Source: Laetmonice hystrix (lineage: Eukaryota). Taken from it: a stretch of DNA of 64,000 nt. The position numbers were made by a program, and so were the translations under genes. Position 1 is the stretch's first letter; each line of letters starts with the position of its first letter. Below are positions 289 to 35,525 of this stretch, piece after piece. Under the pieces are notes generated by a model, which worked only from the letters and a program-made list of their open reading frames with translations, was not told the origin of the DNA and ran no database searches. The DNA lies in NCBI GenBank assembly GCA_965235115.1, contig OZ249437.1, positions 27,156,001-27,220,000 of the forward strand, written 5' to 3'.

Positions 289-2640
289 TACTAAACCTTT
301 TTGCAAGACGGGGTCTTTTGATAAACATCCGCAGCCGCCGTGGAGCTTGTTTGAATAATTTGGCTCAACCACAACTCCAAGTGTTACCTTTATACCAGTT
401 TTTACTCTGTTTCCTGGTGTAATGGATTGGGTTGACGTGGTGGAGGTCCAGCTGTCGTAACGTATCTATATCGAGAGTCCCCACCCGCCTACTCCCGCCT
501 CAGGCTAGCAGATCCTCGGATTGACTTGAACAGAAACGAGTTCATTCCCGTTCAGACCAATATCTGGCAGGCAAATCCTGAAGACAGTGATGCAGCGGAG
601 GGCGGTATCACATGGATTTCCCATCACTTGTAAGTGCGACTGATGTGGAAAGGCGTGCGTTTTTTCCCCTCCTCCTCGGTTGCATTCGCTTGCGTATTTG
701 TGATATCAAGAGGGGAATGTATGTCGGGCCTGCCTCCTCCATTTCCCCCTAGGTCCTGTCCGACATAGCCTAGCGAGTGGATTCCATTTGGCAGGGAAAT
801 GAACTCATTTTGCGCGTGTGTACTCTACGTGTGCCAGCCTCCTACGCTGAAGAACCTCTCTAAATATTCTCATCTTGGCTGACTGCGAGGAAAGTAAAGT
901 TTGGATTTCGTGTTGCCACTCGACAGCACTGCGTGTAGCAAGTATGAAGCAAGCAGTGGTGGGAGCAAACTTTGGGAGATTCTGATGTCCACGCCGATGG
1001 AAAAGTCATGCTTGAGCCGAGACGAACCGGTCACGTTTCCTTGTGTTCAATTTCTTGGCAACTTTTGTCCAAATCTTGTGGAAGAAAACCAAACAGCAGA
1101 GAAAGTATAAGGTGGGGCCTGTCTGTTTATAGCTGACTAGCAATGACGTCGTTCTGAAAATGTACACTGACGGCTTTCTGTTTTTCGGTTGGAAAAGTTA
1201 GTTTATAAAGCAGCTCTTGTCTCAGTTGTCTAATGTACAGCTAATATTTGATTGATGGTCTCAACAGCATTTCGGTCGCTAGCAACCAAACCGAAGAGGT
1301 TATATTTGTCAAGTTGTCTGCACCCAGCCATGACGTCATCCCGGTGCGTATCATAGCTCTGTAACAGACTGAAGAACCCTTCATGCCTTACCATCGAGTT
1401 TGTGTCAATAATGGCGGCCGTTTGATGGCTCCTCCACCAACTCCTCCCACTCACAATTACCGAGATACTCAGTCACCGTGCCAGATTACAATGTTTGCTA
1501 CAAGCATCGCTCGTTGTCAGCAACATTGCCAGTAAAATGATGAACAGTCGACTTCCAAGTCAGTCCTTGCTGGTTACTTACAGGCCATTTAGCAAATGAA
1601 GCCATTTTGGCAGGCCTTATTACTCACTCTTTGACCCAGGGATTATTAACAATATAGGTTTCCATCTTGCCTGGGGAGAATAAGAGTAGATACCGAGACT
1701 GTGAGAACTTACAGACCTGTTTCAACTTTCATCCACCCTCCTGTCGGAACACTTCTGTAGACTGACCGTGGGACCACGACCAATTTGGTCAATCCAATCA
1801 AATATGATAAACCCGGTCCATTCTTCATAATCATTTCCGAGGTAGGCCTTGACCTCAATATTCCCAAAGATGCTTTAACACTTTGTCAAACCAAATTGCC
1901 AGTTCACCAAGCTTAAGAACCCTAATAGGGTTGGTGACAGTACCCTATCTTTTGGTCATCGACCGCGGAACCCCTGTCTCAGTTCAATCGTAATCATAAA
2001 CCGGAATTGATTTTTTAATATATCCTCTTTCCTCTTTCAGACCTTTAGGCTACATTTCCTTTTTTTGTCCTTTTATGAATTCCTATATTATTCAGACACT
2101 TGTATAGAAGGCATGGACTGCTCATACTCCAAAAGGTAGTGGCAACAGTCGAGGTTGATTATTGTATCCCTTGTGGCTCCATGTCAAGGCCCTTCGAATA
2201 TTGAACGGCATTCAGCAGATCCTACCAGGGATTAAGGTGTTCGCCCCTTTCTACTCGCAATGACCAAGGTAACCTCGGAGTGACTTCAATCCTGGTCGGT
2301 GGCGGGCTGATGGTTTTGATGCTCAGTTATCATATCACATGGGTTGATAAGAAGAAGTAGAACAGCCATTATCCCAATGAATCTCAGCCTCTGCCGCTGA
2401 AGACTTGATGTGGGAGGATCGGGGCGGCCTCTGAGTGCCGGCTGTCCACACTGATGAACTGCGGCAGGGCCATCACTGGGGCTTATCTATGGGAAGTGGG
2501 TAAGGAGTTTGGCCCGGGAGGAGATGGAAGTGGCAGGGTAATAAAGTTAGGGTGCCAGAGGATGATGGATGGGCACGGCCAGCGGCCGGTTTGGTATATG
2601 TCGGGCCTGTTTACGGGCGGCGTGGTCGCCCACCCACCCG

Positions 2641-3660
2641 CCCCGACCAGTCCCACCCGCCCGACCAGTCTCACCGGCGGCAACACTGGGCAGGCCGGCC
2701 AGTCACACCGGCGGCAACACTGGGCAGGCCGGCCAGTCCCACCGGCGGCACCACTGGGCAGGCCGGCCAGTCACACCGACGGCACCACTGGGCAGGCCGA
2801 CCAGTCACACCGACGGCACCACTGGGCAGGCCGACCAGTCTCACCGGCGGCACCACTGGGCAGGCCGGCCAGTCTCACCGGCGGCACCACTGGGCAGGCC
2901 GGCCAGTCTCACCGGCGGCACCACTGGGCAGGCCGACCAGTCTCACCGGCGGCAACACTGGGCAGGCCGACCAGTCACACCGACGGCACCACTGGGCAGG
3001 CCGACCAGTCTCACCGGCGGCACCACTGGGCAGGCCGGCCAGTCTCACCGGCGGCACCACTGGGCAGGCCGGCCAGTCCCACCGGCGGCACCACTGGGCA
3101 GGCCGACCAGTCTCACGGCGGCACCACTGGGCAGGCCGGCCAGTCACACCGGCGGCACCGCGGGGCAGTCCGGCCAGTCACACCGGCGGCACCACTGGGC
3201 AGGCCGGCCAGTCACACCGGGGCCACCACTGGGCAGTCCGGCCAGTCACACCGGCGGCACCACTGGGCAGGCCGGCCAGTCACACCGGCGGCACCACTGG
3301 GCAGGCCGACCAGTCCCACCGGCGGCACCACTGGGCAGGCCGACCAGTCCCACCGGCGGCACCACTGGGCAGGCCGGCCAGTCACACCGACGGCACCACT
3401 GGGCAGGCCGACCAGTCCCACCGGCGGCACCACTGGGCAGGCCGACCAGTCCCACCGGCGGCACCACTGGGCAGGCCGACCAGTCCCACCGGCGGCACCA
3501 CTGGGCAGGCCGGCCAGTCACACCGACGGCACCACTGGGCAGGCCGACCAGTCCCACCGGCGGCACCACTGGGCAGGCCGACCAGTCCCACCGGCGGCAC
3601 CACTGGGCAGGCCGACCAGTCCCACCGGCGGCACCACTGGGCAGTCTGGCCAGTCGTTCC
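2641..3660. repeat. GC-rich 34-bp minisatellite, about 30 copies
   Basis: Unit ccggcggcaccactgggcaggccg(a/g)ccagtc(a/c/t)ca. The 34-aa cycle in all three + frame translations equals 3 x 34 nt. Confidence 0.95.
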
Positions 3661-4788
3661 GGCAGCATGCCGGGAAGGCTCCCCAGTCATGAGACAAGGA
3701 TCTCTTCCACAAAGATGGCACATGATTGTCCTTGTTCATATAACATGTCCACAGTGCCAGTTTTTCGTGCAATAAAAGAACACGGAAAATCTCCTTAAAA
3801 GTTTTCGGTGAAGGGCGCCGCAGTATATTATAAATGGCCACTAGTTCAATGGGCGACTTAACCAAAACGGTTTTCTAACATGGGTCAAACCAAAAGTTTC
3901 CCCTTTCCTGAAGTAATGGTCCACTTCACCAAAAAAGTTCACTTTGATCCCATATGCGACCCACATGTTTAGAATCCTATAGCTATGGGCCTGTAGGTCC
4001 TCTTAAGTGTAGAACACTTTGAAATGAAACCGTCCACGCGAAATTAAACAGGAAGGCGACGATTATTGTATTGTATTGTATTGTCAGGATTGAGGAAATA
4101 ATTGTTCAGTGATGAACTTGTCACCAAAATACCGCCCTCTGCTTTGTTCCATTCTTACACTAATTTCACATTTTGCCCATAGTTTTGTGTTATCATTCTT
4201 AAGATCTCGCGTTTAATTTTATTATTTAAACATTAAAAGCCTACTTTAAATGACGAAAGTGGTACCAGGGTACGTGTACTTTTGGGCCGCAGTGTTTCCG
4301 CCCACAGTAGTGACTCGTATTATGGCTGCCCCCTGGTGAGCGTGACAGGAACTAAGTCCGGAAAATAGATTAGGCAGACTAAGTAAGTGTGCAATGGCTT
4401 GGAAATTGAACCTTTACTGCCCTTAGTATTCGATGGAAGATTCTTTTAACATGATGGGACCTGAGAGCTACTAGAAACGGGAATTGAATTAGGTGGAGAG
4501 CTAATGGTATAGCTGTAGTTAATTAGCGGTAAGCCTGGACAGTAAAGCCTCCCTAGATGTGTTCGTCGTAGAGACCTTGAGGTCGGCGTACTCGTGTGAT
4601 AGAGTCCATTTTCATCTCACCAATGGCAAATGGTCGTTCTAACTGTCATGTCGAGTTAGGAAGAAAGATTAAGGACTAACCAAATGATGAAAGTGTTTGC
4701 ATTGACTGGACTAAGAAAGTTGACGACAGAATCTTAGCGCCTAGACTTTCCATCTGTGAAAGAGACAGACAGACAGATAAACAGGCCG

Positions 4789-18975: not shown

Positions 18976-19749
18976 GTGTTTATTAACGGTGTTGTGTGTC
19001 TGACCACCTGGTGTATTGTTCAGGGTCTGTACTCGCGGATCACGTTCCGGGAAGATCTGTACTTGGGTGGTTACAAGAACACCACAATGATTGGGGAGAG
19101 GACTGTGTTTATTAACGGTGTTGTGTGTCTGACCACCTGGTGTATTGTTCAGGGTCTGTACTCGCGGATCACGTTCCGGGAAGATCTGTACTTGGGTGGT
19201 TACAAGAACACCACAATGATTGGGGAGAGGACTGTGTTTATTAACGGTGTTGTGTGTCTGACCACCTGGTGTATTGTTCAGGGTCTGTACTCGCGGATCA
19301 CGTTCCGGGAAGATCTGTACTTGGGTGGTTACAAGAACACCACAATGATTGGGGAGAGGACTGTGTTTATTAACGGTGTTGTGTGTCTGACCACCTGGTG
19401 TATTGTTCAGGGTCTGTACTCGCGGATCACGTTCCGGGAAGATCTGTACTTGGGTGGTTACAAGAACACCACAATGATTGGGGAGAGGACTGTGTTTACT
19501 AACGGTGTTGTGTGTCTGACCACCTGGTGTATTGTTCAGGGTCTGTACTCACGGATCACGTTCCGGGAAGATCTGTACTTGGGTGGTTACAAGAACACTA
19601 CAATGATTGGGGAGAGGACTGTGTTTATTAACGGTGTTGTGTGTCTGACCACCTGGTGTATTGTTCAGGGTCTGTACTCACGGATCACGTTCCGGGAAGA
19701 TCTGTACTTGGGTGGTTACAAGAACACCACAATGATTGGAGAACGGACT
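18976..19749 (+). repeat. Six tandem copies of a 129-bp unit: 48 nt intron end with acceptor plus the first 81 nt of the LG1 exon
   Basis: ttgttcag|ggtctgtac acceptors open at 19024, 19153, 19282, 19411, 19540 and 19669. Copies 1-4 are identical; copies 5 and 6 carry a few substitutions. Confidence 0.97.
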
Positions 19750-19861
19750 GGAATGAGGTGGGGATTCGTCGGCTGTGTACGACTGCTGGAGATCAACAAT
19801 CGCAAGTACGACATGCGCAAAGGGGCGTTTGTCGGCGACGCCATTCACGGAGTGGATGTGG
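19669..19861 (+). CDS. EGFLAM: EGFLAM exon, end of LG1 (GLYSRITFREDLYLGG...GFVGCV...GVDVG), using the most downstream acceptor
   Basis: Phase 0 acceptor and donor gtaagt at 19862 (phase 1). LYLGG and GFVGC are LG hallmarks. Which of the six acceptors is used cannot be told from the sequence. Confidence 0.85.
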
Positions 19862-22023
19862 GTAAGTGTTTGTGTCAAATAAAACCCCTGCTGACGGTTT
19901 ATGAAATAACGCTACCGCTAGCTGTGACCGCTCGTAATGGCCAGACAAAAGTGGTGCCTGGCATCCTGTTTAGTTGGACGTTGCCAGTCTCAACGTGGAA
20001 ATAGAAATACACATGGAGCGTGTCAATGTGTCAGAAAGGTTGAACTGTTACGGTTCAATCGACCTACAATTCTGAAGGCAATGTATTTTTTTAAACCTGG
20101 AGCTGTTTGTGTCAAGTATAAATGTACTCATGATTGTCAACTTTGGCCAACTCGGTTTGATTTGTTCCGAATCGATGGTGGAAGGTATCCAGAGTCGCAG
20201 GACGTCTGGGTGTCAGGTTTTCATTGCTGATTGCCCAAAGTTGACCTAATCATGGGTCTTATACAAGGCACTGGGAGTGACCGATTATGATTATTAGCAC
20301 CATCATCTTTCTGTGGTCGATGTTTGCACCTCCCACCCCCTCCCCCTTCCCTCACTCTTATCTTGTGACAGAACCCCGTGTCTCGACCCCAACCAACGAG
20401 TCTCTCTTCACACGTGTATGCATGTGCCGCCAAGTGACACATCTGCGCACCCACACGAAGCCTGCTCTAAGAACATGCTCAGGTTTTTCTTTACTCGCAT
20501 GATGAACACGTTGTTCTCTCAGTATGATCCTCTTACCACCAGTAGCACACAGAGCAGAGCTCACAGAGCCCCGAACAATTACCGTCTGGTTAGTGAGCTA
20601 CCCACTGTCTGTCTGAATCTCCCGGGATTAGCAGTTCCCCCCTGTAGAGTGACTACTTCTTCATTAACCTTACCATGCACATCCCTCAGAGACGCCCGTG
20701 TGGTCCCAGCTAGGTCCCGCCAGACAGGCTCTGTCCAACTGCTCCCCCACCCTATCGGAAAGGTCAACATACAGTTGTCGGAACCCAAAGCCTGGGAAAC
20801 ACATAGCACAGACCGCCATGACTAATGGCAGGGAGAGAATGAGAAGTGCCGAATTAGCTGGCCCTTGAGCCCACTGCTGGGCCTGGGTTGTCATTTGTCA
20901 ACAGTGAAGTCGGCGGTCAGGGCACATGGTCCACAGTGAGACTGAACGATAATGGCCGCTGGATATATATGCTTTGTCTACCCAATGGTGTAGCGCTTTG
21001 GTAAGGATTCCACCGTAGATTAGGGTCAATATTTCTAGAACGTGGCACCTATCTCGACCGATTCATCGTGCACATATGTGATTTTTTTTCTTAAATCGAA
21101 CCAGTCCTTTTAAATGATAAGTAGCGTCTTAAAATTAATCCGAGTTATAACAATGTACAAGAAAATCAAACTTGAGTAGACTCCTCAAAACAAACATTCG
21201 GTCTGATGGATATAAATGTAGATACATAACTTAATTATGGAATAGTATTGATTAATTATTGCCGATTATGCCATTTGTCTGTACAAATAGTAAGAGAATC
21301 TAACATTTTAAATATGATTCCACAGATCTCTTTATAATTCATGAATGTCTTGTGTCTTACCCAATACTAGATACATTATGAGAATCTTATTATAATTCAT
21401 ATCAACATATGCTAAAACGCTAAGCATTTGTCTTCAGCAGTAATGTAGGATTTCGTAATAGCAAAGAAGAAGAGAATGATTGTCATTTTGAACGTTTACA
21501 TATCTAAAACGCTTCATCAAAGCAACTAATATAATGTATTTATCGGTATAATAGTAATTGGTTAACGACTACGGACAGCGACAAGGTTCCACCCACCCTA
21601 TGTTTGCACTGTATTTGCACAAACCTAGCTTTATCACCATATTCTGGTCGAATTGCAACAAGATCTGAGAGATGGCACCCTTTGTGCTTTACGTCAAGGA
21701 GGCAGGAGCGATTTGGATTTTGAGGGGGCTAAATTCATTATGTCTTTGTCCTAAAACTGATATTCCTGGTGTAAGTAGTGTACCGGGTCTATTTGCACAA
21801 AACGGTAACAGACTTTTAATCAGATTGTATAACAACAGATAATAGTAGGACTATTTTCTTCATTTTTAGGTTAGATTCCAATAATAAATGACTTGGGGAG
21901 AGAATCAATGTTTGTTATTGACCAGAATATGGTGTAAAGCCAGTGAACGTGAGCCTCATTGCTCTGCCCTCACTGCACCTGCTAACCGACGCCATGTTGT
22001 TTCTTGTGCTTTCGCCCTCACAG

Positions 22024-22026
22024 AAG
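22024..22026 (+). CDS. EGFLAM: Candidate 3-nt microexon (AAG) of EGFLAM
   Basis: Branch-like gctaac (21980-21985), AG-free pyrimidine tract with TGC at 22007-22009, then cag|AAG|gtacgt. Frame-preserving in a phase 1 intron. Confidence 0.5.
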
Positions 22027-22889
22027 GTACGTGCTGCGGTTAAAGCCACATGTAAGGAGTTTGCCTCATGCTAGCCCGTAGGCGTCTCACAAAAAAATCA
22101 TCCTTGCATGCCACATTCCTCCCATCGATGGTTTACCTATACATGTCCATACTTATATATGTATCTCTCGATGTATGTGTGTGACATGGTTCCGATGTTA
22201 CAGCAGCATGATAGGTGGGCGAGGTGTTACCACTGCCCCGGCTGGGTTTGACGTCTACCGTCCATAATACCATGATAATGATAAACGCTTTATCAGGGGA
22301 TCCCACTACTACATCCGGGTGTGGAGATGACGTCAGGCGGGTGGGATTGTACTGCGCATGTGTCGTCCACTAACCAATCAGTTAGCTAGTTCTACTGCTT
22401 GAGTGTCCGATATTCTCACGGTGTTCTTCTGCCAGTTATTTGTATATATCTGTTTTTCTGTATATATATATGCAGGACATGGACCTGTTGCACAGATAGC
22501 GTCTGCTTGACTGAAAACGTATAGGAAGCTCGTTATGGGGGTGGTTTGCAGAAATAGTTTTTTAAAAAAGTTACCTTTTGTTTTAACACTTATTGTTCGT
22601 GCCTTTTTTTTAGACTAACAACTTAAGATTGATTTGTCTGTCATATTTCTATTTTATATTTTTTTACCGTCTTATCGATTCATCTGCGTCACTAAATGAC
22701 ATGTCTTCATGTACAGCCTTAGATCATGTTTTCTTTTCCCGTTCCACGGAGTTCGGTTGACGTTCTTGAAAGCGTCAGTTCTTGGTTTTTCATCTGTTTC
22801 CGTGCAGATAATTAGAATCGTGATTTGTACTTTTTCCACCAACTCCTCCTGTACATGGGTTGTCTGATGATGTTTGGTGCGTGATCCAG

Positions 22890-23015
22890 GGGAGTGCTCC
22901 AGTGGAGTGTGTGAGAAGGTGAAGTGTCAGAACGGCGGCTCCTGCGTGGCTGACTCGGCTGACAGTCACGTGTGTCTGTGCCCGCTGGGTACGGCCGGAG
23001 ACAGGTGTGAAAATC
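22890..23015 (+). CDS. EGFLAM: EGFLAM exon, EGF-like domain 2 (GECSSGVCEKVKCQNGGSC...CLCPLG...RCEN)
   Basis: Acceptor tccag ending 22889; donor gtgagt at 23016; EGF cysteine spacing; phase 1 to phase 1. Confidence 0.93.
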
Positions 23016-23280
23016 GTGAGTACCAAACGTCAGCCTGGAGTCGTCTGAGGTTTTAGGCCCTATGACGTCATGGAAACTATGACGTCATTTGTCGAATACG
23101 GTATCTCTTTGTTTTGGCGATAAAAAATGATGGCGTAGATAATCGTAGATGTATCATCCGCGTACATTTTTTAAGTAGGCATGCTGGGTAAGATTTACGC
23201 TGTAAATAGGCCTATATTATTATTATCAAAGTTGGGAAATGACGTAGATTGGTAACATTTAAACTTGTGTTATATTTCAG

Positions 23281-23518
23281 GAATTGACATCCAGGTGACG
23301 TCGTTTAGCGGGAACTCGTACCTGCAGTTTATCGGCCTGCGGCGAACTGTTCTCTCGTTTACCGAGGTAGAGATAGTCTTTAAGGCGGAGCATCATACGG
23401 GTCTGTTGTTTTACAACGGGTACACAACGGACGGCAGCGGAGACTTCATCGCACTGGCTCTCGTAAACGGCTACCTCGAGTTCCGCTTTGACCTGGGAAC
23501 CGGCCCTGCAATCATTAG
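23281..23518 (+). CDS. EGFLAM: EGFLAM exon, LG2 first part (IDIQVTSFSGNSYL...EFRFDLGTGPAII)
   Basis: Acceptor tttcag ending 23280; donor gtgacc at 23519. Confidence 0.93.
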
Positions 23519-24179
23519 GTGACCTTTTAAATGGGGCAACTTTTTTTGTGAGGGGGGGGGGGGAGCGAGGTCACTAAACGTGGCAAGTTCAAACTGACTT
23601 TCGACATTGTCGTAAGTATAGATTCTACGTACAGGTCCTGGCCAGTGTGTTTGTTTTTAAGAGTTTCAAGCAAACGGTCTAAATGTATTTATACAGTGTT
23701 TAATCGGTCTGCCTTTGACAGATTCACATAATGGGATTTTTACTGATTCGCTTCCATTACGGCTTCTAGATTTTAAATCGATTCTTTTATCGCGGCAGTA
23801 TCCTTGTGTATTCCTATTGAGGGTTCTGATAAAAACGTGAAGTGACTTAAATGGAGGATCAGAGTGAAGATTTGATGAACATTTTCTGTGCTCCACGACG
23901 ATTGCCTAATCCAAGTAGTGGCTGGGTGTGTTCAGGCTTTATGGTATTTCAGTACAGAACACTTGAAATTAAATCACAAATAATCCATTCGCGGTGTCCT
24001 CAGAAACGCTGAATATTGTTAGGCTTATGGCACTTTCTCCAAGTAAAGCCTACCCACGTCAGCATGGTCGTGTTTTTTTAATCCTTTGACTGCGTTACTA
24101 CATAGCGGTATATCATCAAGGACATAATTATAATCATTATTATAACCGAAGTAATTACCATTTCTGTTGTTTACTGTAG

Positions 24180-24408
24180 GAGTCGGAAGCCGCCCACCCT
24201 TAACGAATGGCACGTGGTTCGGTTCTCGAGAACTGGACGAGATGGCTACATGCAGATCGACAACCAGGCCGCCATCGAGGGCATGTCCAAGGGCGCCTAC
24301 ACACAACTCACCTTGACACTTGACCTTTTTGTTGGAGGTCATCGGAATTTTGATGAGGTCGCTAAAAACGCTGGAATTAAAGATTCCTTCAAGGGTTGTA
24401 TACAGAAG
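24180..24408 (+). CDS. EGFLAM: EGFLAM exon, LG2 second part (SRKPPTLNEWHVV...LFVGG...FKGCIQK)
   Basis: Acceptor tgtag ending 24179; donor gtaatg at 24409. Confidence 0.93.
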
Positions 24409-25896
24409 GTAATGACAAACAGAATGTGGTATCTTTTATGGAAAATAATATACACAGCTAATTCTAGTTTCTATGTGAATTTCAGAAAGTAATAATGTCG
24501 GATAGAAAAATAAGTGTATGTGTTCAAACCCGTCGTTATCATAGAAGGCGCTCTCATTTAGACATTAGGGCCTATATCTAGACAAGATAAATTTAATTTA
24601 TCCTCTTGACAAAACTCTGCCACACAAGACATCTCCTATTTTCGCATGAGAACGATTTGAGATTGAATAGTGGGGCCGTGTGCGCCATCGTTGTGCGCTC
24701 TAATCGGTTTCATCCATACATATTTGAGGTCAAGCCCGTCCAACCCCTACAGTGATCTGAAGCTTGGGAATAGTGAAGACAAAATTGAAAACCTCCAGCA
24801 AAGCCCTATGGTGTATTTCAGCCGTTGTATTACTGGAATATGTCTCCAGTGGGGATCGTAACGGTTGCAGTGGTCCATGGGTTTGACTAGGTCTCCCGTC
24901 TCTGTAAAATCGCAGAGAATTGGCGGGCAAGAGTTCACTGAAGAGCCTCAGAATACAGCTCAGGAAGATAGCAATATAAAGGCGCTAACCACTGGGACTG
25001 CTTTGTTAAAGAAGACATTCGTAACTCCCTTTGTAAAGAAACTACAGACGAGGCCTTGGGCACAAATGCTTTCAGGAATCCAGTGGGAGTTAACTGGGCT
25101 GTGATATGTAGAAGCCAGTGGCGCTGAATGGCGGAGGGAAGGGGTAACCTTAGCTTTGCACGCCCGCCCCTACCTCATCAGTACTAATACCCGTGTTGTA
25201 GCAGTATGGGGGCGGATTACCCCCAGGACGTCATGAGTTGATACTTAGGCATTTTATCACACTCCTGGGAGTTGTCAATATTTGCAAAGTATGTAACCGA
25301 ACGTGGACCACAAAGGACGCGGTGTCTGAGAAAACGAAGCCATTTGATCGTAATTGCTGTCATTTTAATGAGTTGGTCTCATTGGGAAGCTAATATAGCG
25401 CCCCCTATGGGAGTAAAAGAATACATTGGGTGTGAAGGAGTAGACATGAGGGAGATTTTACACAGCACCAGTTGTCATTTAGCGCCCAGTACTCTACAAG
25501 CATGTTCCTTGTTTTTTGTTTGCTGAGACATTTGCTCGTTGTGAGTCTAACTTGTGTTTTGATGGGCAATGAGCCCTGGGAATTTTTTTTATAGAACCAT
25601 CCTTCAAATCCCGGACAGGGTTCAATAGTGTATGGAATATGAATCGCTACAAGACACTGTGAAATTTGAATAGGGTTATCAAATCTGCATCCAGCTTCGT
25701 TGTACAGGAATAGCCTTTGCCATGAGTTCTTCCGATGAAATTATCAACGATGGAAATGATCTAGGAAATTAGAGACAGCAATAACACACTGACGATAAAA
25801 ACTAATAATCCGTTCTAATTCAACCACAACGCGGAGCACGGAACTTATAATGAATTTGGCTTGACAGTAAGGACAAGGTCATATCCAGACGCTGGA

Positions 25897-26090
25897 CAGT
25901 CGGCCCAGTCTCCATCCAGTCTGTACCCAGTCCGTCCCCAGTACCCAGTCCGTCCCTAGTCTCCAGTCCGTCCCCAGTCTCCAGTCCGTCCCCAGGACCC
26001 CGTCCTTCCCCAGTACCCAGTCCGTCCCCAGTACCCAGTCAGTCCCCAGTCTCCAGTCCGTCCCCAGTACCCAGTCCGTCCCCAGTCCAC
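25897..26090. repeat. 18/19-bp minisatellite, about 10 copies
   Basis: Repeats of cccagtccgtccccagt(ac/ct). Confidence 0.9.
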
Positions 26091-27176
26091 CAGGAAGGTG
26101 ATCGCTCAGTGACGGTTGACGTATTAGAGTTTGTTTTGAGTCTAACCGTGACTTTGATTGTCTGTCGGGGGCCTGGGCACACGTTAAACACGGCCAGCCG
26201 GGAGTACCGTCAGAGCAGCCATCACAAAGCCTGCGCGTCTGGTTTTAACTAATTGAAGCAGAAAAACAGCTGGCGTTGGGACGGTTGGGGAAGGCAGGGG
26301 GTCAGGCCAGGTGATGTATCATCGCTGTAACAAGCTTAGGCCCGATCTGAGCGTCTCTGGACTCTATCAATCCGCCATGATTCGGTTAACGCCGGACAGA
26401 CGCAACCGGCACCGTGAGCCAGGTTAATCATCTAAAGTATCAATGATCTATTATAGCATGGCTAGCAGAGGGAAAATAGCACAGGACAGTGAGAAACGGA
26501 CGGTTAGTTTCTAGTTTATGTAATGTTTGCACAATAAAGGAGTTAGATATTGCTAGTATTATTGCTGCTCGAGGCGTGTGGCTGTTTTGTTGACTGTCGC
26601 CTGTCTATATGAATGCTCTCTGCTCGAGTTGCGCCACGTAATTTGTTTTCCGTTCCGTGTCTCTGCTAAGTTTAAAGGAGTTGGCAGGAGTGGGAGGATA
26701 GCCGGGTAATTGGGCCTGGGTCAGTCGAGGTCTGATTGTAATACTCGCAGCCTACCACGGAACGACCAAAAGAAACTGTGTGGTCCCAGCCGGACAGTAA
26801 CCAGCACCGACAGAACCAGGAAAAAGTGACAAACCAATTTTCCTGGACAAACACCCGTCGGAGGGTCTTTCCCCGGACACTACTGGAAAGTTAATGATGA
26901 TGGGAGTGGGATTAAAAGAAAATTACCGAATTGATCGGGCCAACGAATTCGGCCCCTTTTAGGGGGCGGGGGGGGGGGGGTAGGACCTGCATCTCCAGCT
27001 GAGACCAATGCATAGGCCTACCGATTGTCTGCTGCATGGTTATCAACCCCCTTGGAATCCAACCATTCTATCTTTGACCTTTTTCAGGATATCTTCCATT
27101 CTCGCTTGCTCCCTTGTTCTAGTAGCAGTGTGGGTTCGAACTGAAGCATAAGGCATCAGTTCGCTGGGGATGGAAT

Positions 27177-27220
27177 GGGGTGTGGGTGTGGGTGTGGGTG
27201 TGGGTGTGGGTGTGGGGGTT
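27177..27220 (+). repeat. (GGGTGT)n microsatellite
   Basis: About 6 tandem gggtgt units. Confidence 0.9.
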
Positions 27221-28669
27221 AAGTAATAAGTAGTGGCCGGCCCCCAGGTGGTAGTTTAACTTAAAGTGGATTACCGCTGTCTGGTAGCTGCCTGGACCAG
27301 CCGTGAACTACTGGCCGGGGAGGTAGGCGTGGGGACCCTGGGCCCCCTGGAGGGGACAAACCATAGGAGGGCAGGGGGTGGTCAGATGGGGCCCCCAGGA
27401 ATAATGCACCTGACCGGGGGACACATCATGGGGCCAATGCACCATGGTGCCGACACTGCGGACACGGCACTGTTTAGAACCGATCTCTCATCATGTCGGT
27501 GACTGGGGCGCCGTCTGTTTGACAACAAACATCACCAGAGGGCGCTTAGCACAGCCTGCCTCCATCCGGGATCTGTGGACATCCCCACGGTGTCAGCTCA
27601 GAATGCGCCGCCGCGAATAAAAAGTGCCGTTTATTGACGGCTTCTATTGGCATGAATGATTGCATTGAGGCCTGAACTGACCGTTCGGACCGGAACCTAT
27701 GGAGGCCACGTGACCTTTGACCTGACGTAGGGGCTCAATCGTGAAGTTATTCTCATGCATAAGTCATAAAGGGGGGCTAACCAGGCATGAATGTCACCGA
27801 CACTCAAGAAAATATCACCCCGACGTGGCCACGCCTTCCGCGGGAAGTAATTCACGACAAGTGAGAAATATAAATCTCATAGACACACAGACACGCCGCC
27901 GTGACTGAGCTCAAACTAACCAAATCTATTCAATCTAGGCACCAAGTAAAGGCATACGGAACCCAGTTTGACCGGATGGAATCCTGTTTGTATATTTACC
28001 CTCCTGTAGGAGTGAGTTTCACCTCACCTCTAGACGGAACGTAAGGGAGGTACAGCTACACATGACGTCAGTCATTGGATCCTGGTTAACAATTGACCGT
28101 ACCATCTATTCGGACAAGATGAACTTCAACTTTACTGAAGCAAAAAAATGGTTCATTTAATAAAATCCATTTAAACATAATTTGTCTAAATATGGGTCCA
28201 CTTAGCAACCAACCAACTAACCAACCAAAAAATACATACGTTTTAGGGTTTCTGTACTTAGTATGATTGCATTTCAGGCACCAGGTTTTCCATATTATTC
28301 CGTGTCAATATGTTGGGTATTAGCTCAGATACATAATGCTAGACGATCTGCGTATGTATGGTTAAGCTCCTCATTTTAAATGCTAACCCGTATACTTAAG
28401 TATCGGAAGTCCTGCTATGCAAAGAACAGAATCGGATCGATGGTAAAGTTTAAACTCAGGAAGGAAGTGGAGACTGTTACAAGAGTTAGGTTTAACTGAA
28501 TTAATTGACGTAATGAGTTTCTTGTTCAGATCTCTTTAACCAGAATGAAAAGTGTTTTGGGAGGGGTGTCTTGAAGCAACAGTGGTTATCTCTGAATGGA
28601 GCAGACATTTGGGAGTTTTCTTTTGTTGAAATAAACTGATGTATTTTGGTTTTTTTTCTCCCCGACCAG

Positions 28670-28850
28670 GTTGTAATCAATGAGCGGCCGTTGAAGTTAC
28701 TGGAGGAAGCGATCAGTGGAGTAAACATAGACAACTGTAACCATCCATGTACCGGGCAGCCGTGTCTGAACGGAGGACGCTGTATCCCCATCAGGGACTT
28801 CTACAAGTGCAGCTGTCCGCTTGGATTTGAAAATACCAACTGTGAAGACA
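28670..28850 (+). CDS. EGFLAM: EGFLAM exon, end of LG2 plus EGF-like domain 3 (VVINERP...HPCTGQPCLNGGRC...CSCPLGFENTNCED)
   Basis: Acceptor accag ending 28669; donor gtaagt at 28851 (phase 1). Confidence 0.93.
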
Positions 28851-30944
28851 GTAAGTATGATTCAGCACGTAAGAGTTCTATCGAGTGCCATTTGTATAAG
28901 TAACAAAATATACATAGGGAGACGGAGATTAGGTCTGCCATGCAGCCAATGTATGCAGCATATATGCATGTATATATGATAAACGCTTGTGATTGTGTAG
29001 AAGAAATCTAAACATAACATGTATCAAAAGAGTTGTGAATATTTCTATGATAACCAAACCAAAGACGTAAATGATACCCGTATTATAATTTCAATGTGTC
29101 TCATCATAGGAAGCCAAACGTTGCCCATTGTGCTACATAGAGTTATATATATATATATATATAGTATTTTGCAGATAATGGTAGTTTAAGGCATTTGAAT
29201 GGATAAACTAAATCTTACCTCACAGACACAAGCTTTTACTTAACTACTGATAGCACTCTATTCTTCCACTTCTCATGAATTGTTTCTCCATACTAATATT
29301 CTATGAATATACCTACTATATTTTCAACGAATTTTGTACAGTGCATATCAGAGACATTATGGAATTCAGGGAAACTTCATGGGGAACTGCTTTGGTGGAC
29401 ATTGTCCTGCAGTATAATTACATATCAGTTATTGTACATTGAGGGATCTTTCGACTTCAGTTCTCAGTATTAGACTATTTATATATAGATGATTTATACA
29501 GGTACTCTCTGGATGATGACCAAAGATACCGATCGAATATTTAGCTTTCACAGAAATTGCAGGGTTAGAAAATTGAGGGCATAATTACATCCAAACATAT
29601 TTCTCGCTCTTTATGAATTCGGCATTATGTTAATGCAAAGAAAATTTTCGACAGGTGCTAATTGTTCAGGTTGTGTTCAGAGATAGAAGTCATCGGATAG
29701 AACTTGTCACAGCGGCCGGGTATAGAGGTTTGGATTGGGGGTTACTATAGTGTTTGCAGGTTACGGTTTTGGTCTTAAGGGTAAAGTCAGTAAGGTCAGG
29801 GTATCACGTTAATTAATTAATGAATGAACCTGTGTTATAAATAAGAGTGTCCTAAATGTAATGTCTAACTTGTTACTCACAAGCCACATTGTTAACTGCT
29901 ATGGAATGTTGTTGTCCTACGCCGGAGGCAAGTTGTGTAAAGGGCGACAAGTCCTGTCATTGTGTGTCATCATAACGTTACCTGAGTTCTTACATGTGAT
30001 CAAATCAAAAACCACCGTAAACTTAGATACGTTAGCCATGCAGTCTATATGTTTAATGCTATATGGAGTCGAAGAATGTATGGTAAAAAATGCCTGCACT
30101 AGTCAAGAACCGTTAGTTGAGAATTCTCTGGGAATGACTGACACATTCTTTTCTCTGTCTGAATACCCTAGATGATAGCTACAGGAAACTGTAAACCAGC
30201 ATGAAATTACTGCTCTTGTTCTTAAAGATTCTGTCTACTTCATAAATCTATAAAAGGTACACTATATTAGACCATGGATTAGCCTGATGTAAACTTATAT
30301 ACGCTGTGGTCATGATAATAGCTCTTTTTCCTTTTGTATACAAATGAATGTGTATGTACATCAATTTTTTCCCCTGAACAATTCGTTACATTTGCATATA
30401 TTTGCATAATGTATGCAAACCATCTGTAGATCACATCTGCTGTCAGATTGTATGTCTGCAGGGTGATGTTTCTGAGGGCCCCAGAAACATCATGTCCTAC
30501 ATACGAGCCATTTATCAGATGTGATGTGCAGATGGTCTGTAGCTTGAATCCTCCTAAAACTGTAGCTCTGAGAACCTAGATACACATTATCCTTGCATGG
30601 AACCCTCCCTGCTCTAGAAGACAGTAACCCCCACAGCCGTCGACTGCCATGTGTTCTTAGCCCAGAGAAGGCACTCTTGTGCCTTTATACAGGCTTGTTG
30701 TACTCAAGGAACCAAACGCAGATTTGCTCACCACCTTCCTGCCTGGTGCCCCTCATCCCAGAAGTGGTTTCTCCCAGCAATGTCAAGGGTTGATTCCATT
30801 GTGGGATTGCCAGGGGAGGTGTGTCGTGGAGTGCCTTGTTCGTCGCCGACCTGAGCAAGTCTGCAGCTGCTGTTGTTAGACCATCTATACGGTCCTAGAC
30901 CGGCACAATTTGCCCTTCTCTCTCCCTTACTCTGCCCCTCTCTC

Positions 30945-30980
30945 TGTCTCTCTCACTCTCTCTCTCTCTCTCTCTCTCTC
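30945..30980. repeat. (CT)n microsatellite
   Basis: Run of ct dinucleotides. Confidence 0.85.
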
Positions 30981-31455
30981 TGGAAGTGTAGCGTCTCTTA
31001 CAGGCATGCAAAAAAAAACTGTTTCAACTGACCTGTGATGTCACCTTTGTGCTCCTTCATTTCATTTTACCTCAGCAACTTCAGTTTCATCTATTTTTTT
31101 TTGGTATTGGTCGCGCACGGCCCTTACATTCTCTACAGCTACGATATAATTTCATTTTATTTGGAACCTCATGACTATGACTTTTGTGTGTGATTCTGAC
31201 GTACGTGCACCCTGTTTACTCCTGACCGGAGCAGGCGTTTTGTCCCTCCCTCCCCCTCCCCCCACCAAACCCACACACACAAAAAAAGAATTTTTAATCC
31301 AGATATACCACAATTTTGTGGGATTTCTTTTTTCCAAGTACTTTTTTTGCAAGACGCAGCAAGCGTTGTATATATATATATCTCGATTGTTATTACATTT
31401 CTGTTGTGACGGTACGATTAAAATCACCGTTTCTGTTCATGTTCCGCCACTGCAG

Positions 31456-31530
31456 AGGTTTTGGACCGCTCTCGATTATATTTTGCGCGTGCCCGGCGAG
31501 GTCCTTATGCTAACGCCACCGAACCCCCAG
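31456..31530 (+). CDS. EGFLAM: Candidate 75-nt alternative exon of EGFLAM (K-VLDRSRLYFARARRGPYANATEPP-E)
   Basis: About 90 nt AG-free region ending ctgcag (31455); donor cag|gtgatg at 31531; phase 1 to phase 1; open in the EGFLAM frame; two tandem TGCATG at 31651-31662. Confidence 0.45.
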
Positions 31531-33122
31531 GTGATGCCTACGTCACGCTTCAGTCACACTGCACATGCTCGCTCCCGCACACCGCGTGCTCTCACACTCA
31601 CACACCGGGACATTATTTTCATCATGTTCGGTGGCATTTTTCACACAACATGCATGTGCATGCAAAGCTAAGGCGTGACAGGTTCACAGTTTTGCTCAAG
31701 ATGACCCGATCAACGCCCCTTTCAAACCTACTCTTTTGGGAGATTTTTCCCCGAGGCAGCAGAAGTTGAATTTTGACATGTGCTATTTATTCACCGCTTG
31801 TAAATATATCTATTTTGATACATATTTTTGAGACAAACATAGAATGATTGTCTAATTTGCAATAATTTACTTGGGTGAAAATAGAAAAAATAACCAGTAG
31901 TTGTCTTAAGCTGCTGAAATGCCTTCTTTTTTTTGTAAAGGACAGTTTTGCTACCCTTTCGTTTGAAAAGAAATTGCAAGCGATGGTTTTTTTTGTCAAC
32001 CCGGTAGAATTTATTTCGGAAAGTAGACCTTTTGTCGCACTTATTTTTTGTAAGACCCTTCGGCTTGGCTGATCCAACACCAGCTTTGTGTTTGGTACCA
32101 CTGAAAACCTGATCCGTCTATGGGACGGTTTGCCTGCCTTAGGTCAACGTCCATAACCAAGTTCAATTCATCACGCTTCATGAAGGTAACATAGCCCATT
32201 GGTTGACCAGAAACTATTGAAAAATCATAGTCATAGTTACATCTCAAAGTCATTTTACAGTCACTTGCTGAAACTCGCCGTACCATCATCTCATTCATGG
32301 ATGGATAAATTCCCAGAACGCCTCTGTACGTTAGAGATCATCTGGAGCACAAAAGGACGTCCACAGAATGTTGTCACGTTTGTTGTGTGCATGTTGTTAT
32401 AGCATGAGTCTGCCGCCGCTGCCGCTGCCGCTGCAGTGTTTTACCTCATTCCATTGCCGTGTAGACATGCAATTAAAGGATGTGCGTTGATATGACCTGT
32501 CTGATTCACACACGGATACATACCTTTTAATACACATTAAAGTGGGTTGAAATGGGAGTGGGGGTATGTCTGCCTATAGCTAAACCTTTACATTTGGGCA
32601 GCTTGTACGTGATTATGTGCCTGTCGAGCAGAAAACACTCGGATATGCCAGAAAACTTGTCAGGTATTTACGCTTACAGCGGCAGCCATTCACATGAAAT
32701 TAAAGTATTCATAATTATTTTGGAATTTATTCTAGGGAGACTTAATGGATCATTGAGATGCAATTCAAGTGCATTAAAGGGTATATTCCATTTGATTATT
32801 ATATCGACAGGTGTTATTAAAGTGTGTATGAGTGAAAGTGTTTGATTTTCTGGTGTTCTAATTTAACGGATCACATGTGTTGTGGTGTGAAATTGTCGAC
32901 GTGTGCATTTCGTGTGTTGACGTCATAATCGGACATGGTGCATTGCGTGTGTTGACGTCATGTATACGGTGCCAGTGTGGCCGACCAATCGACGCTCCCC
33001 GCTGGCTTGCCTGTTGTGACGTGGCGTTGCCTCCACAACCATCCGCACTCACTAACGCTTCACACTTGGTTTTGTTCCACTCCTCACTTGCCTTGCATGC
33101 CATCGTGTGGTGGGAATTGAAG

Positions 33123-33137
33123 GGAAGGCGCGCCGAG
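33123..33137 (+). CDS. EGFLAM: Candidate 15-nt microexon of EGFLAM (R/G-K-A-R-R)
   Basis: Branch point actaac at 33051-33056; first AG after it is at 33121-33122; exon ggaaggcgcgccgag; donor gtacgt at 33138; frame-preserving. The acceptor itself (tgaag) is weak. Confidence 0.5.
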
Positions 33138-34575
33138 GTACGTGCTCAACTCGACCCAACAACTCTTGACGGTTCTCAAGTCGGTCATCGTGCCGATACG
33201 ACTACATTTCAAGTAGACTTGTAACCAATGGCTGCACCGCTGTGTACGCGCTCATGGTGCGGCTGGCCCCTGACCTATGACCCCCTGACCCCTAGTAGCG
33301 CGAGGTCCCGCAACCTGTACCACCCCCACCCCCCCATCCGACCCCAGAACCCCCATGAACCCTCCTCGTAGGGGTTGTGAGTGTAGGAACAGTGTGACGG
33401 GCACCAGGCTTAAGCCTGAATGGACACGGCAGACACACACAGGCCTTGGCACGACTGGCCAGCAATAGAAACCTATAACTTGTGGTAACTCTAAACTTTG
33501 AATAATTCAACAGTCTGCACTATACTGATCTCAAACTAACCTTCTGCACCTGTGTACATATGTAAAGTTTGAAGAGTTTCGATATGCCATGATACATGAA
33601 AGTGGTTAAGTCGCCAGGAGGTTATCAATATAAATATGTCACTAACAGTTTCTTGTACACATTAATGTTAACTGATGTAGGTTTATAGGATGAATGCGGT
33701 GTGCTTATCCTTTTAAGTAGTGTATATTTTCTTTAGCGCTACAGATAGACACTCTTTGGCTATACGTTAGACTAAGGTAAAAGTCTCAGAAATTCGCCTC
33801 AGTTTCCATGTGGTAGGTAAATAAATGCATGATATGCCTAATGATTCTGGCATGCCTTCTGTGATACTAGTCACAAAATTAACATGTGGTCCAACTATTA
33901 TGATTGGGATACTCATGCCTTTTTTCTAATCCTGATTTATTGAGAATAATACATTTAAGCAATGTTTGATGTGTGTATCTAATTGCGTATGATTAGCACT
34001 GCGGGTTGGTGTAGGAGATGATGTAAGTAGTATATAAAAAGTGTAAGTAGTCTATAAAAAGTGTGTGTGTCTGTGCTGAGGTTCCTTCCGGTCCCCCCTG
34101 CTGGGAGCCACACTGCCTCTACCCTCACAGCCAACGTGTCTTATAGCTATGGGCCTACTGTATGTTATGTTACCATGTAAAAAGGCGATTCGCACCAGCC
34201 AAACTGACAACTGTGAAGCCTCTGTGTATGGTTAGAAATGACGTTGATATTAGGCTTATGCAAAATCTGACCCATTCATTCCACGAAGCCACCGAGCTTT
34301 CCTTTGTATTCTATGAATTATGTTCTGCCTCGCGTCATTTTAATTGATGCAGACGTTTTGAAGCTTATCATGAATTCACATAGGCTGTTTGAAATAACTA
34401 AATACAATGGTATTATTGATTGAATTTTGGACCAGACTTCTGTTCTGCAAGTCTCACAAAAACGAGTTGATCAGCAGTCAAGGTGGTGCGCACCGTCTAA
34501 GCTAACCTATCTTAAGTTACAGCAGACAAGTTGTAGACCCCCTTATACTTACGTTGTTACAATGCCCTCATGCAG

Positions 34576-34654
34576 AGTTGAAGGAACCAATCAGGGAGCC
34601 AATGTTTGGTGGCGACAGCTACCTAGTCTACATGGACCCTTTCATCATGCAGAG
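34576..34654 (+). CDS. EGFLAM: EGFLAM exon, start of LG3 (LKEPIREPMFGGDSYLVYMDPFIMQR); not in the ORF track
   Basis: Acceptor tgcag ending 34575; donor gtgtgt at 34655. Phases 1 to 2 exactly bridge the neighbouring exons; PxFxGxSYL is the LG start motif. Confidence 0.88.
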
Positions 34655-35294: not shown

Positions 35295-35525
35295 GGTTCG
35301 TGGGAAGAAGATCGATATTCAAATGAAGATCAAGGCCAAAGGCCCGGATGGTCTGCTCTTCTGGACGGGAGAGGAGAAGATGACGTCATCGAGTGACTAC
35401 CTTGCCCTGGGCATTGACAGTGGTCACGTCCAGTTCGGCTACAACCTGGGCTCGGGCGAGGTGGTTATCACCTATAACGAAAGCCGTATTGACGATGGCG
35501 CTTGGCACAAGATCCGAGCTCAGAG
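35295..35525 (+). CDS. EGFLAM: EGFLAM exon, LG3 core (VRGKKIDIQMKIK...YNLGSG...DDGAWHKIRAQR)
   Basis: Acceptor tacag ending 35294; donor gtacgt at 35526. Confidence 0.93.

Follow-up and report, generated by a model that had tools for sequence, protein, structure and literature searches.

The window analysed here is a stretch of 64,000 nucleotides (nt) from Laetmonice hystrix (assembly GCA_965235115.1, contig OZ249437.1, positions 27,156,001 to 27,220,000 of the forward strand). Judged by its domain array and database relatives, the gene on its + strand is a lophotrochozoan orthologue of pikachurin (EGFLAM), and our subject is the intron between its second EGF exon (EGF2) and its third laminin G domain (LG3), where a candidate microexon of 15 nt lies. 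An earlier note on the window, made from the sequence alone, had likewise taken the gene for a pikachurin orthologue and had proposed that three frame-preserving exons of 3, 75 and 15 nt form a neural-type microexon programme at its LG/EGF boundaries. The identification was confirmed. Pfam matches to Laminin_G and EGF in successive + strand exons gave the C-terminal array LG1, EGF, LG2, EGF, LG3. When the LG3 exon was used in a profile search and full-length searches followed, the top full-length matches were proteins named pikachurin from many phyla, and the best database relatives were pikachurins, not agrin, perlecan or neurexin. In tblastn searches against the window, the closest proteins were the metatranscriptome protein P0152 (72%) and those of Owenia fusiformis (61%) and Lingula anatina (58%). 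In precomputed Pfam lists, the FN3 domain (PF00041) appeared in vertebrate pikachurins only, not in invertebrate "pikachurin-like" proteins.

The boundaries of the constitutive exons were set by alignment of P0152, and the resulting exon map also agrees with the pikachurin assignment. The end of LG1 is encoded at 19669-19861 (Pfam Laminin_G; 74% tblastn identity to P0152; phase 1 donor gtaagt), followed by the 126-nt EGF1 exon at 22890-23015, which is phase 1 on both sides (Pfam EGF; 87% identity to P0152). The exon at 28670-28850 encodes the end of LG2 and EGF2 and ends GAAGAC A/gtaagt (Pfam EGF; ~77% nucleotide identity to the relatives' sequences L029, L030 and L040). The first LG3 exon, with a phase 1 acceptor, lies at 34576-34654, where tblastn placed P0152 and where positions 10163-10246 of L029 and 6432-6526 of L040 align; a further exon at 35295-35525 was set by the P0152 alignment. 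The LG1-to-EGF1 and EGF2-to-LG3 introns are thus both phase 1. The earlier note had given the flanking exon ends and starts correctly (19861, 22890, 28850 and 34576), but its junction from 33123 to 34576 did not stand, since the 15-nt exon begins at 33123 and its donor follows 33137.

All the sequence features that the note had listed for the three candidates were present. The 3-nt candidate is AAG at 22024-22026, preceded by cacag and followed by gtacgtgct. The 75-nt candidate at 31456-31530 lies between ctgcag and gtgatg and is open in phase 1 over 25 codons. The 15-nt candidate, GGAAGGCGCGCCGAG at 33123-33137, lies between ttgaag and gtacgtgct. The AG-free tracts upstream of the 3-, 75- and 15-nt segments measured 68, 90 and 145 nt respectively; CTAAC was found at 21983-21987 and 33051-33055, with TGC upstream of both the 3-nt and the 15-nt candidate, and the 11-mer AGGTACGTGCT occurred in the window only at the donors of these two. 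All three candidate regions are single-copy in the genome, which rules out a repeat or transposon origin. Four sequencing runs were found, all from one sample. X1-X3 covered the EGF2-to-LG3 intron continuously, and are therefore DNA; X4 gave no reads on the locus, so that none of the four is an RNA run containing it. Reads from genomic DNA runs gave ~40 variant places in 6 kb, none of them inside the candidate exons, a density too sparse for inference.

The 15-nt unit in three lineages

Comparison contigs were found by a cross-junction fragment search, a pattern scan and LG3-exon fragments. Two of them, the genomic contigs L029 (14.9 kb) and L040 (15 kb), each cover the entire EGF2-to-LG3 intron. 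The EGF2 exon of the window is 77% identical to that of L029 and 76% identical to that of L040, and those of L029 and L040 share 80% identity with each other; the three introns are otherwise unalignable. All three, nevertheless, hold a unit of 15 nt between AG and GT: GGAAGGCGCGCCGAG in the window (33123-33137), GGAAGGCCAGGCGAG in L029 (8590-8604) and GAAAGGCCAGGCGAG in L040 (4663-4677). In phase 1 each of them encodes RKARR, and all four variable sites among them (4/4) are synonymous. Such a pattern, in which only synonymous changes occur, means that the RKARR peptide is under selection. A frame-preserving length within the 3-27 nt of a microexon, AG and GT kept in three lineages and an open phase 1 frame were thus all found in the same unit. 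Its inclusion would change the linker from ..CED-K-LKEP.. to ..CED-RKARRE-LKEP...

Searches that started from either side converged on this unit. When window positions 33063-33197 were compared with the L029 intron, the best local match was exactly AG, the 15 nt and GTA (17/20 identical). Reciprocally, L029 landed on window 33121-33140 and L040 on 33121-33159. The introns of the window and of L029 had just two ungapped 20-mers in common at 17 or more matches, an A-rich one and the microexon. A degenerate pattern for RKARR-coding segments between AG and GT occurred once each in the window, L029 and L040. It was absent from ~200 kb of background and from the loci of Owenia, Lingula, Tubulanus and amphioxus.

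The flanks of the unit carry conserved signals as well. A branch-point-like ACTAAC (33049-33055), ~70 nt upstream of the microexon, is invariant in the three sequences, with CTAAC at -71 in the window, -70 in L029 and -76 in L040. A CTTGCATG block upstream of the microexon is also kept in all three. In the window it corresponds to CTTGCATGCCATCGT (33091-33105), between the branch point and the AG, which contains UGC motifs and UGCAUG; 13/15 of its bases are identical in L029, and CTTGCATGTCA was found in L040. The TGCATG stands at -29, -24 and -19 in the window, L029 and L040 respectively. The AG-free zone of 145 nt in the window corresponds to zones of 79 nt in L029 and 107 nt in L040, and within 35 nt of the microexon AG there are three TGC in the window and two in each of the relatives. 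At the donor, gtacgtgct (33138-33146; donor score 4.6), GTA is kept in all three. The extended donor context that the window shares between its 3-nt and 15-nt candidates is not conserved, the 15-nt donors of the relatives being gtaaaatc and gtacagtg. The precise position of the unit, its purely synonymous variation, its presence in a second species and the motifs around it together give it strong comparative support as an exon.

We needed to weigh this support against chance. Frame-preserving, stop-free segments of at most 90 nt between AG and GT numbered 178 and 290 in the two introns, and with so many to choose from, some candidates are easily picked. Scored by a generic splice matrix, the 3-nt candidate was the best of its intron (11.2 versus 1.9 for the runner-up) and the 75-nt candidate ranked first of 295 in its own (7.4 versus 2.1), while the 15-nt candidate had a poor acceptor (-6.8); decoys with similar total scores were common on both strands when longer segments were allowed. 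We also counted a microexon-type combination, defined as an AG-free zone of at least 40 nt, TGC within 40 nt, a strong donor and a length of 3-27 nt in multiples of 3. In 400 kb of neighbouring strand-sequence there were 4 such cases, so that 0.087 would be expected in the introns (8.7 kb); 2 were observed. This enrichment is suggestive only, because the thresholds were chosen after the candidates had been seen.

These counts bear on the possibility that all three candidates are chance pseudo-exons, and that the conserved block is a non-coding intronic element, such as a silencer, an enhancer or a decoy, absent from mature mRNA. The abundance of frame-preserving segments and of good-scoring decoys speaks for it, as does the fact that the candidates are known from genomic sequence alone, and a second conserved element of the intron, the hairpin apex described below, is plainly no exon. 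Against it stand four synonymous sites out of four, with AG and GT exactly at the boundaries in three lineages, and the conservation of the branch point and the polypyrimidine region at a suitable distance. By a codon degeneracy calculation, the chance that a 15-mer flanked by AG and GT and encoding the same peptide would turn up in a 4.4-kb intron is ~1e-5. We therefore regard this explanation as very improbable.

A second alternative is that the 15-nt block is, in this clade, a constitutive exon that annotation and assembly have missed, with no regulated switch. A coding unit can be conserved without being used alternatively, and the one skipping transcript comes from the relative P0152/L004, not from the window species, L029 or L040. 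That transcript, however, is a full-length mRNA which joins EGF2 straight to LG3 (NCED-PIREP). The acceptor of the block is very weak by the generic matrix, and regulated microexons typically have the layout seen here, with a distant branch point, a long AG-free zone and a UGC block. A constitutive exon thus appears unlikely, and the 15-nt unit is better read as a cassette.

The 75-nt and 3-nt candidates

The relatives carry a cassette of their own at a position comparable to that of the 75-nt candidate. L029 (6706-6762) and L040 (3343-3399) share an open 57-nt cassette with 13/19 residues identical and six synonymous codon changes. It forms an island of conservation in an unalignable intron, with EGF2 on one side and the 15-nt exon on the other, which is also the order around the 75-nt candidate in the window. 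The donor region of the latter (31521-31566) and L029 6753-6794 are reciprocal best local matches, and 2 and 4 of 200 shuffles scored as well. The two cassettes differ in length by 18 nt, which preserves the reading frame. Given this collinearity and the top splice score of its intron, we lean slightly towards the 75-nt candidate being a real cassette exon.

The same intron contains a single-copy hairpin of 118 nt (30416-30536; dG -58 kcal/mol, z -7.5). Its 23-nt apex, with a TTTCTG stem and an AGGGCCC loop, is identical in L040 2708-2733, where it also lies between EGF2 and the 57-nt exon, atop a shorter hairpin with different stem letters. The apex was not found in L029, and an Rfam scan of the EGF2-to-LG3 intron, hairpin included, returned no match. 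The hairpin could represent a structural element of the intron that has been conserved, or it could give rise to a small RNA.

The 3-nt candidate fared differently. Its inclusion would insert Glu between LG1 and EGF1, and its splice score, its AG-free zone, CTAAC and TGC all looked favorable in the window. However, no 3-nt site was present in the complete LG1-to-EGF1 introns of relatives, which measure ~330 nt (L036, L037) and ~150 nt (L034). In a third relative, neither the 4.6 kb that precede EGF1 (L038) nor the 1 kb that follows LG1 (L035) showed any similarity. None of ~120 orthologues varies at the LG1/EGF1 junction, so that the proposed microexon has neither a counterpart in the relatives nor an isoform precedent. 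That it is a real exon is doubtful; most likely it is a chance pseudo-exon.

In the coordinated programme of the earlier note, all three exons would be neural and a shared donor code would act at both LG/EGF boundaries. In favor of such a programme are the 3-nt candidate's combined splice score of 11.2, the highest of its intron, and the rare feature set and exact 11-mer donor that it has in common with the 15-nt candidate. Against it stand the absence of the 3-nt site from the relatives (with no similarity in the 5.6 kb of the third), the invariance of the LG1/EGF1 junction and the loss of extended donor identity in the relatives' 15-nt exon. We consider a three-exon programme improbable. The proposal of the earlier note is thus partly supported: the 15-nt exon strongly, the 75-nt exon as a plausible case and the 3-nt exon not at all, so that one microexon holds and the three-exon programme does not.

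Two repeats were observed toward the 5' side. A 129-bp tandem repeat (18976-19750; six copies, 98% identity) reaches into the LG1 exon at 19669-19861; every copy repeats the first ~80 nt of that exon together with the acceptor-bearing 3' end of the intron before it. The repeat is open in frame throughout, and the last copy alone runs into the remaining LG1 exon. It has arisen either by recent duplication or through an error of the assembly, and its extra acceptors could compete in principle. Further upstream, the stretch at 2400-3800 has 62% guanine plus cytosine, is open in all three + frames and contains repeated PT/GQ-rich units (…TGGNTGQAGQSHRR…); this is probably an array of low-complexity repeats that precedes the pikachurin gene.

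Overall, the comparison makes it quite likely that the EGF2-to-LG3 intron holds a genuine conserved 15-nt cassette microexon at 33123-33137, with a probable 75-nt cassette upstream at 31456-31530. Several observations weigh against this reading. The alignment score of the 15-nt block is by itself borderline, with 11/200 shuffles as good. The similarity between the 75-nt peptide and the relatives' 57-nt peptide is not significant (p ~0.2-0.3), and the L040 search gave no match to the window at the 75-nt candidate. The introns of Owenia and Lingula at these junctions are just 300-500 nt long and hold no microexon-like counterpart, which limits the microexon to a sub-clade. Among ~20 protostome transcript/RefSeq clusters, no variant was found at either junction; assemblers and annotators readily overlook microexons of 15 nt. 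Finally, inclusion, neural specificity and SRRM/eMIC dependence are read from the layout of the splice signals alone.

Splice signals and the linker insert

In published work, the cis code of eMIC-dependent microexons combines a strong CUAAY branch point and a long AG-exclusion zone with UGC close to the 3' splice site, and in most SRRM3/4 microexons the UGC is located between the branch point and the AG. The earlier note had claimed this layout for the 15-nt candidate, and here it was borne out: the AG-exclusion zone, UGC, CUAAY and a weak 3' splice site are all present, and the branch point and UGC/UGCAUG are conserved in L029 and L040. Like the neural microexons that depend on SRRM3/4 (eMIC), the RKARR exon is short and frame-preserving and combines a weak acceptor with a good donor. 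In addition, its conserved block contains UGCAUG, the Rbfox motif, and therefore another regulator may act on it. An exon-sized match to SRRM_C (PF15230) on contig 18 at 20459758-20459838 (L043) scored 29.9 bits, above the curated cut-off of 27, and spanned positions 29-55 of the 67 in the profile; it probably belongs to a Srrm234 orthologue with an eMIC region.

These signals suggest a possible course of regulation. The 15-nt exon would be alternative and not constitutive, because the relative's transcript and all orthologue models skip it and its acceptor is weak. Such an acceptor would need an activator that reads the UGC-containing region. The activator would likely be of the Srrm234/eMIC type, possibly modulated by Rbfox through UGCAUG, and inclusion would then be neuron-enriched. 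Inclusion would put a cluster of four basic residues into the EGF2-LG3 linker. The cluster could form a heparan-sulphate-binding patch, as the KSRK of the agrin y insert does, or alternatively it could provide an RxxR/dibasic convertase site that frees LG3. In vertebrate pikachurin, the dystroglycan-binding unit is LG2-LG3, so either effect on the linker would matter.

The comparison with agrin is instructive within limits. Its y (KSRK) and z (8, 11 or 19 amino acids) inserts resemble the RKARR exon in being short alternative inserts in the LG-EGF-LG array of a synaptic matrix protein. An insert of the agrin y/z type would be placed in an LG loop beside the ligand-binding edge. This did not hold for RKARR, which stands instead at the junction of EGF2 (..NCED) and LG3 (LKEP..); agrin y lies in a loop of LG2 whereas RKARR lies in the EGF2-LG3 linker, and no homology between them is shown. 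The agrin z site is inside LG3, not at the EGF/LG3 exon junction, so that to call the pikachurin site "z-equivalent" is just a loose analogy. One review places agrin z between the last EGF and LG3. As for agrin y, the basic tetrapeptide has been described as adding heparin binding and lowering dystroglycan binding.

The EGF2/LG3 junction across bilaterians

Alternative splicing recurs in other lineages at the junction between EGF2 and LG3, with an insert of 24 nt in non-mammalian vertebrates and one of 81 nt in amphioxus. In 18 non-mammalian vertebrate proteins, an 8-residue insert, ECGNYCLN (24 nt), occurs at the EGF2/LG3 junction. It was found in fish, amphibians, reptiles and birds, while the non-human mammalian isoforms compared differ at another site. 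The vertebrate EGFLAM exon resembles the RKARR exon in occupying the same phase 1 intron, from the last EGF to LG3, and in being a short frame-preserving cassette. Its insert, however, is Cys-rich and unrelated in sequence, whereas the RKARR insert is basic. EGFLAM has also been listed among the genes with regulated microexons in a VAST-TOOLS study. We looked for a homologue of the ECGNYCLN exon in the introns of the window, Owenia and Lingula and found none; the window intron contains no CxxYC-coding segment.

In amphioxus, isoform X1 of a pikachurin-like protein differs from X2 in carrying an 81-nt cassette at the EGF2/LG3 junction (L008 77419-77499). The cassette shares its position with the window candidates and has a tgctaac branch-like motif upstream. 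With 27 codons, however, it is above the microexon limit of 27 nt, and it has no detectable similarity to the 75-nt or 15-nt candidate. Apart from amphioxus, the isoforms surveyed in invertebrates (~20 clusters) varied in the N-terminal region. A 25-residue "insert" in the Tubulanus polymorphus RefSeq isoform X1, relative to X2, was considered as a precedent for the 75-nt candidate and rejected, because it is the in-frame retention of a 75-nt intron (L007 22912-23259).

The inserts of 15 and 57/75 nt in an annelid-like clade, 81 nt in amphioxus and 24 nt in vertebrates raise a broader possibility. The EGF-to-LG3 linker may be an ancient or repeatedly recruited splicing switch across bilaterians, in which RKARR would be a neuron-specific, eMIC-controlled switch that alters the bridging between dystroglycan and synaptic receptors, either by convertase release of LG3 or by heparan-sulphate binding. 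We put this forward as a speculative reading, to which we give a minor share of the probability.

To our knowledge, very few neural-type microexons have been documented outside vertebrates and insects. The microexon programmes of fly and mammal have been reported to have evolved largely in parallel. A coding-constrained microexon in a lophotrochozoan synaptic-matrix gene would therefore offer a test case for whether splice hot spots are inherited or re-invented, all the more as the RKARR exon sits at a junction where chordate pikachurins also carry alternative inserts. For annotation, the finding suggests that low-coverage genomic contigs of relatives are by themselves enough to recover 15-nt exons which gene models have missed. 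For the protein itself, the RKARR insert would represent a testable route to tuning or releasing LG3.

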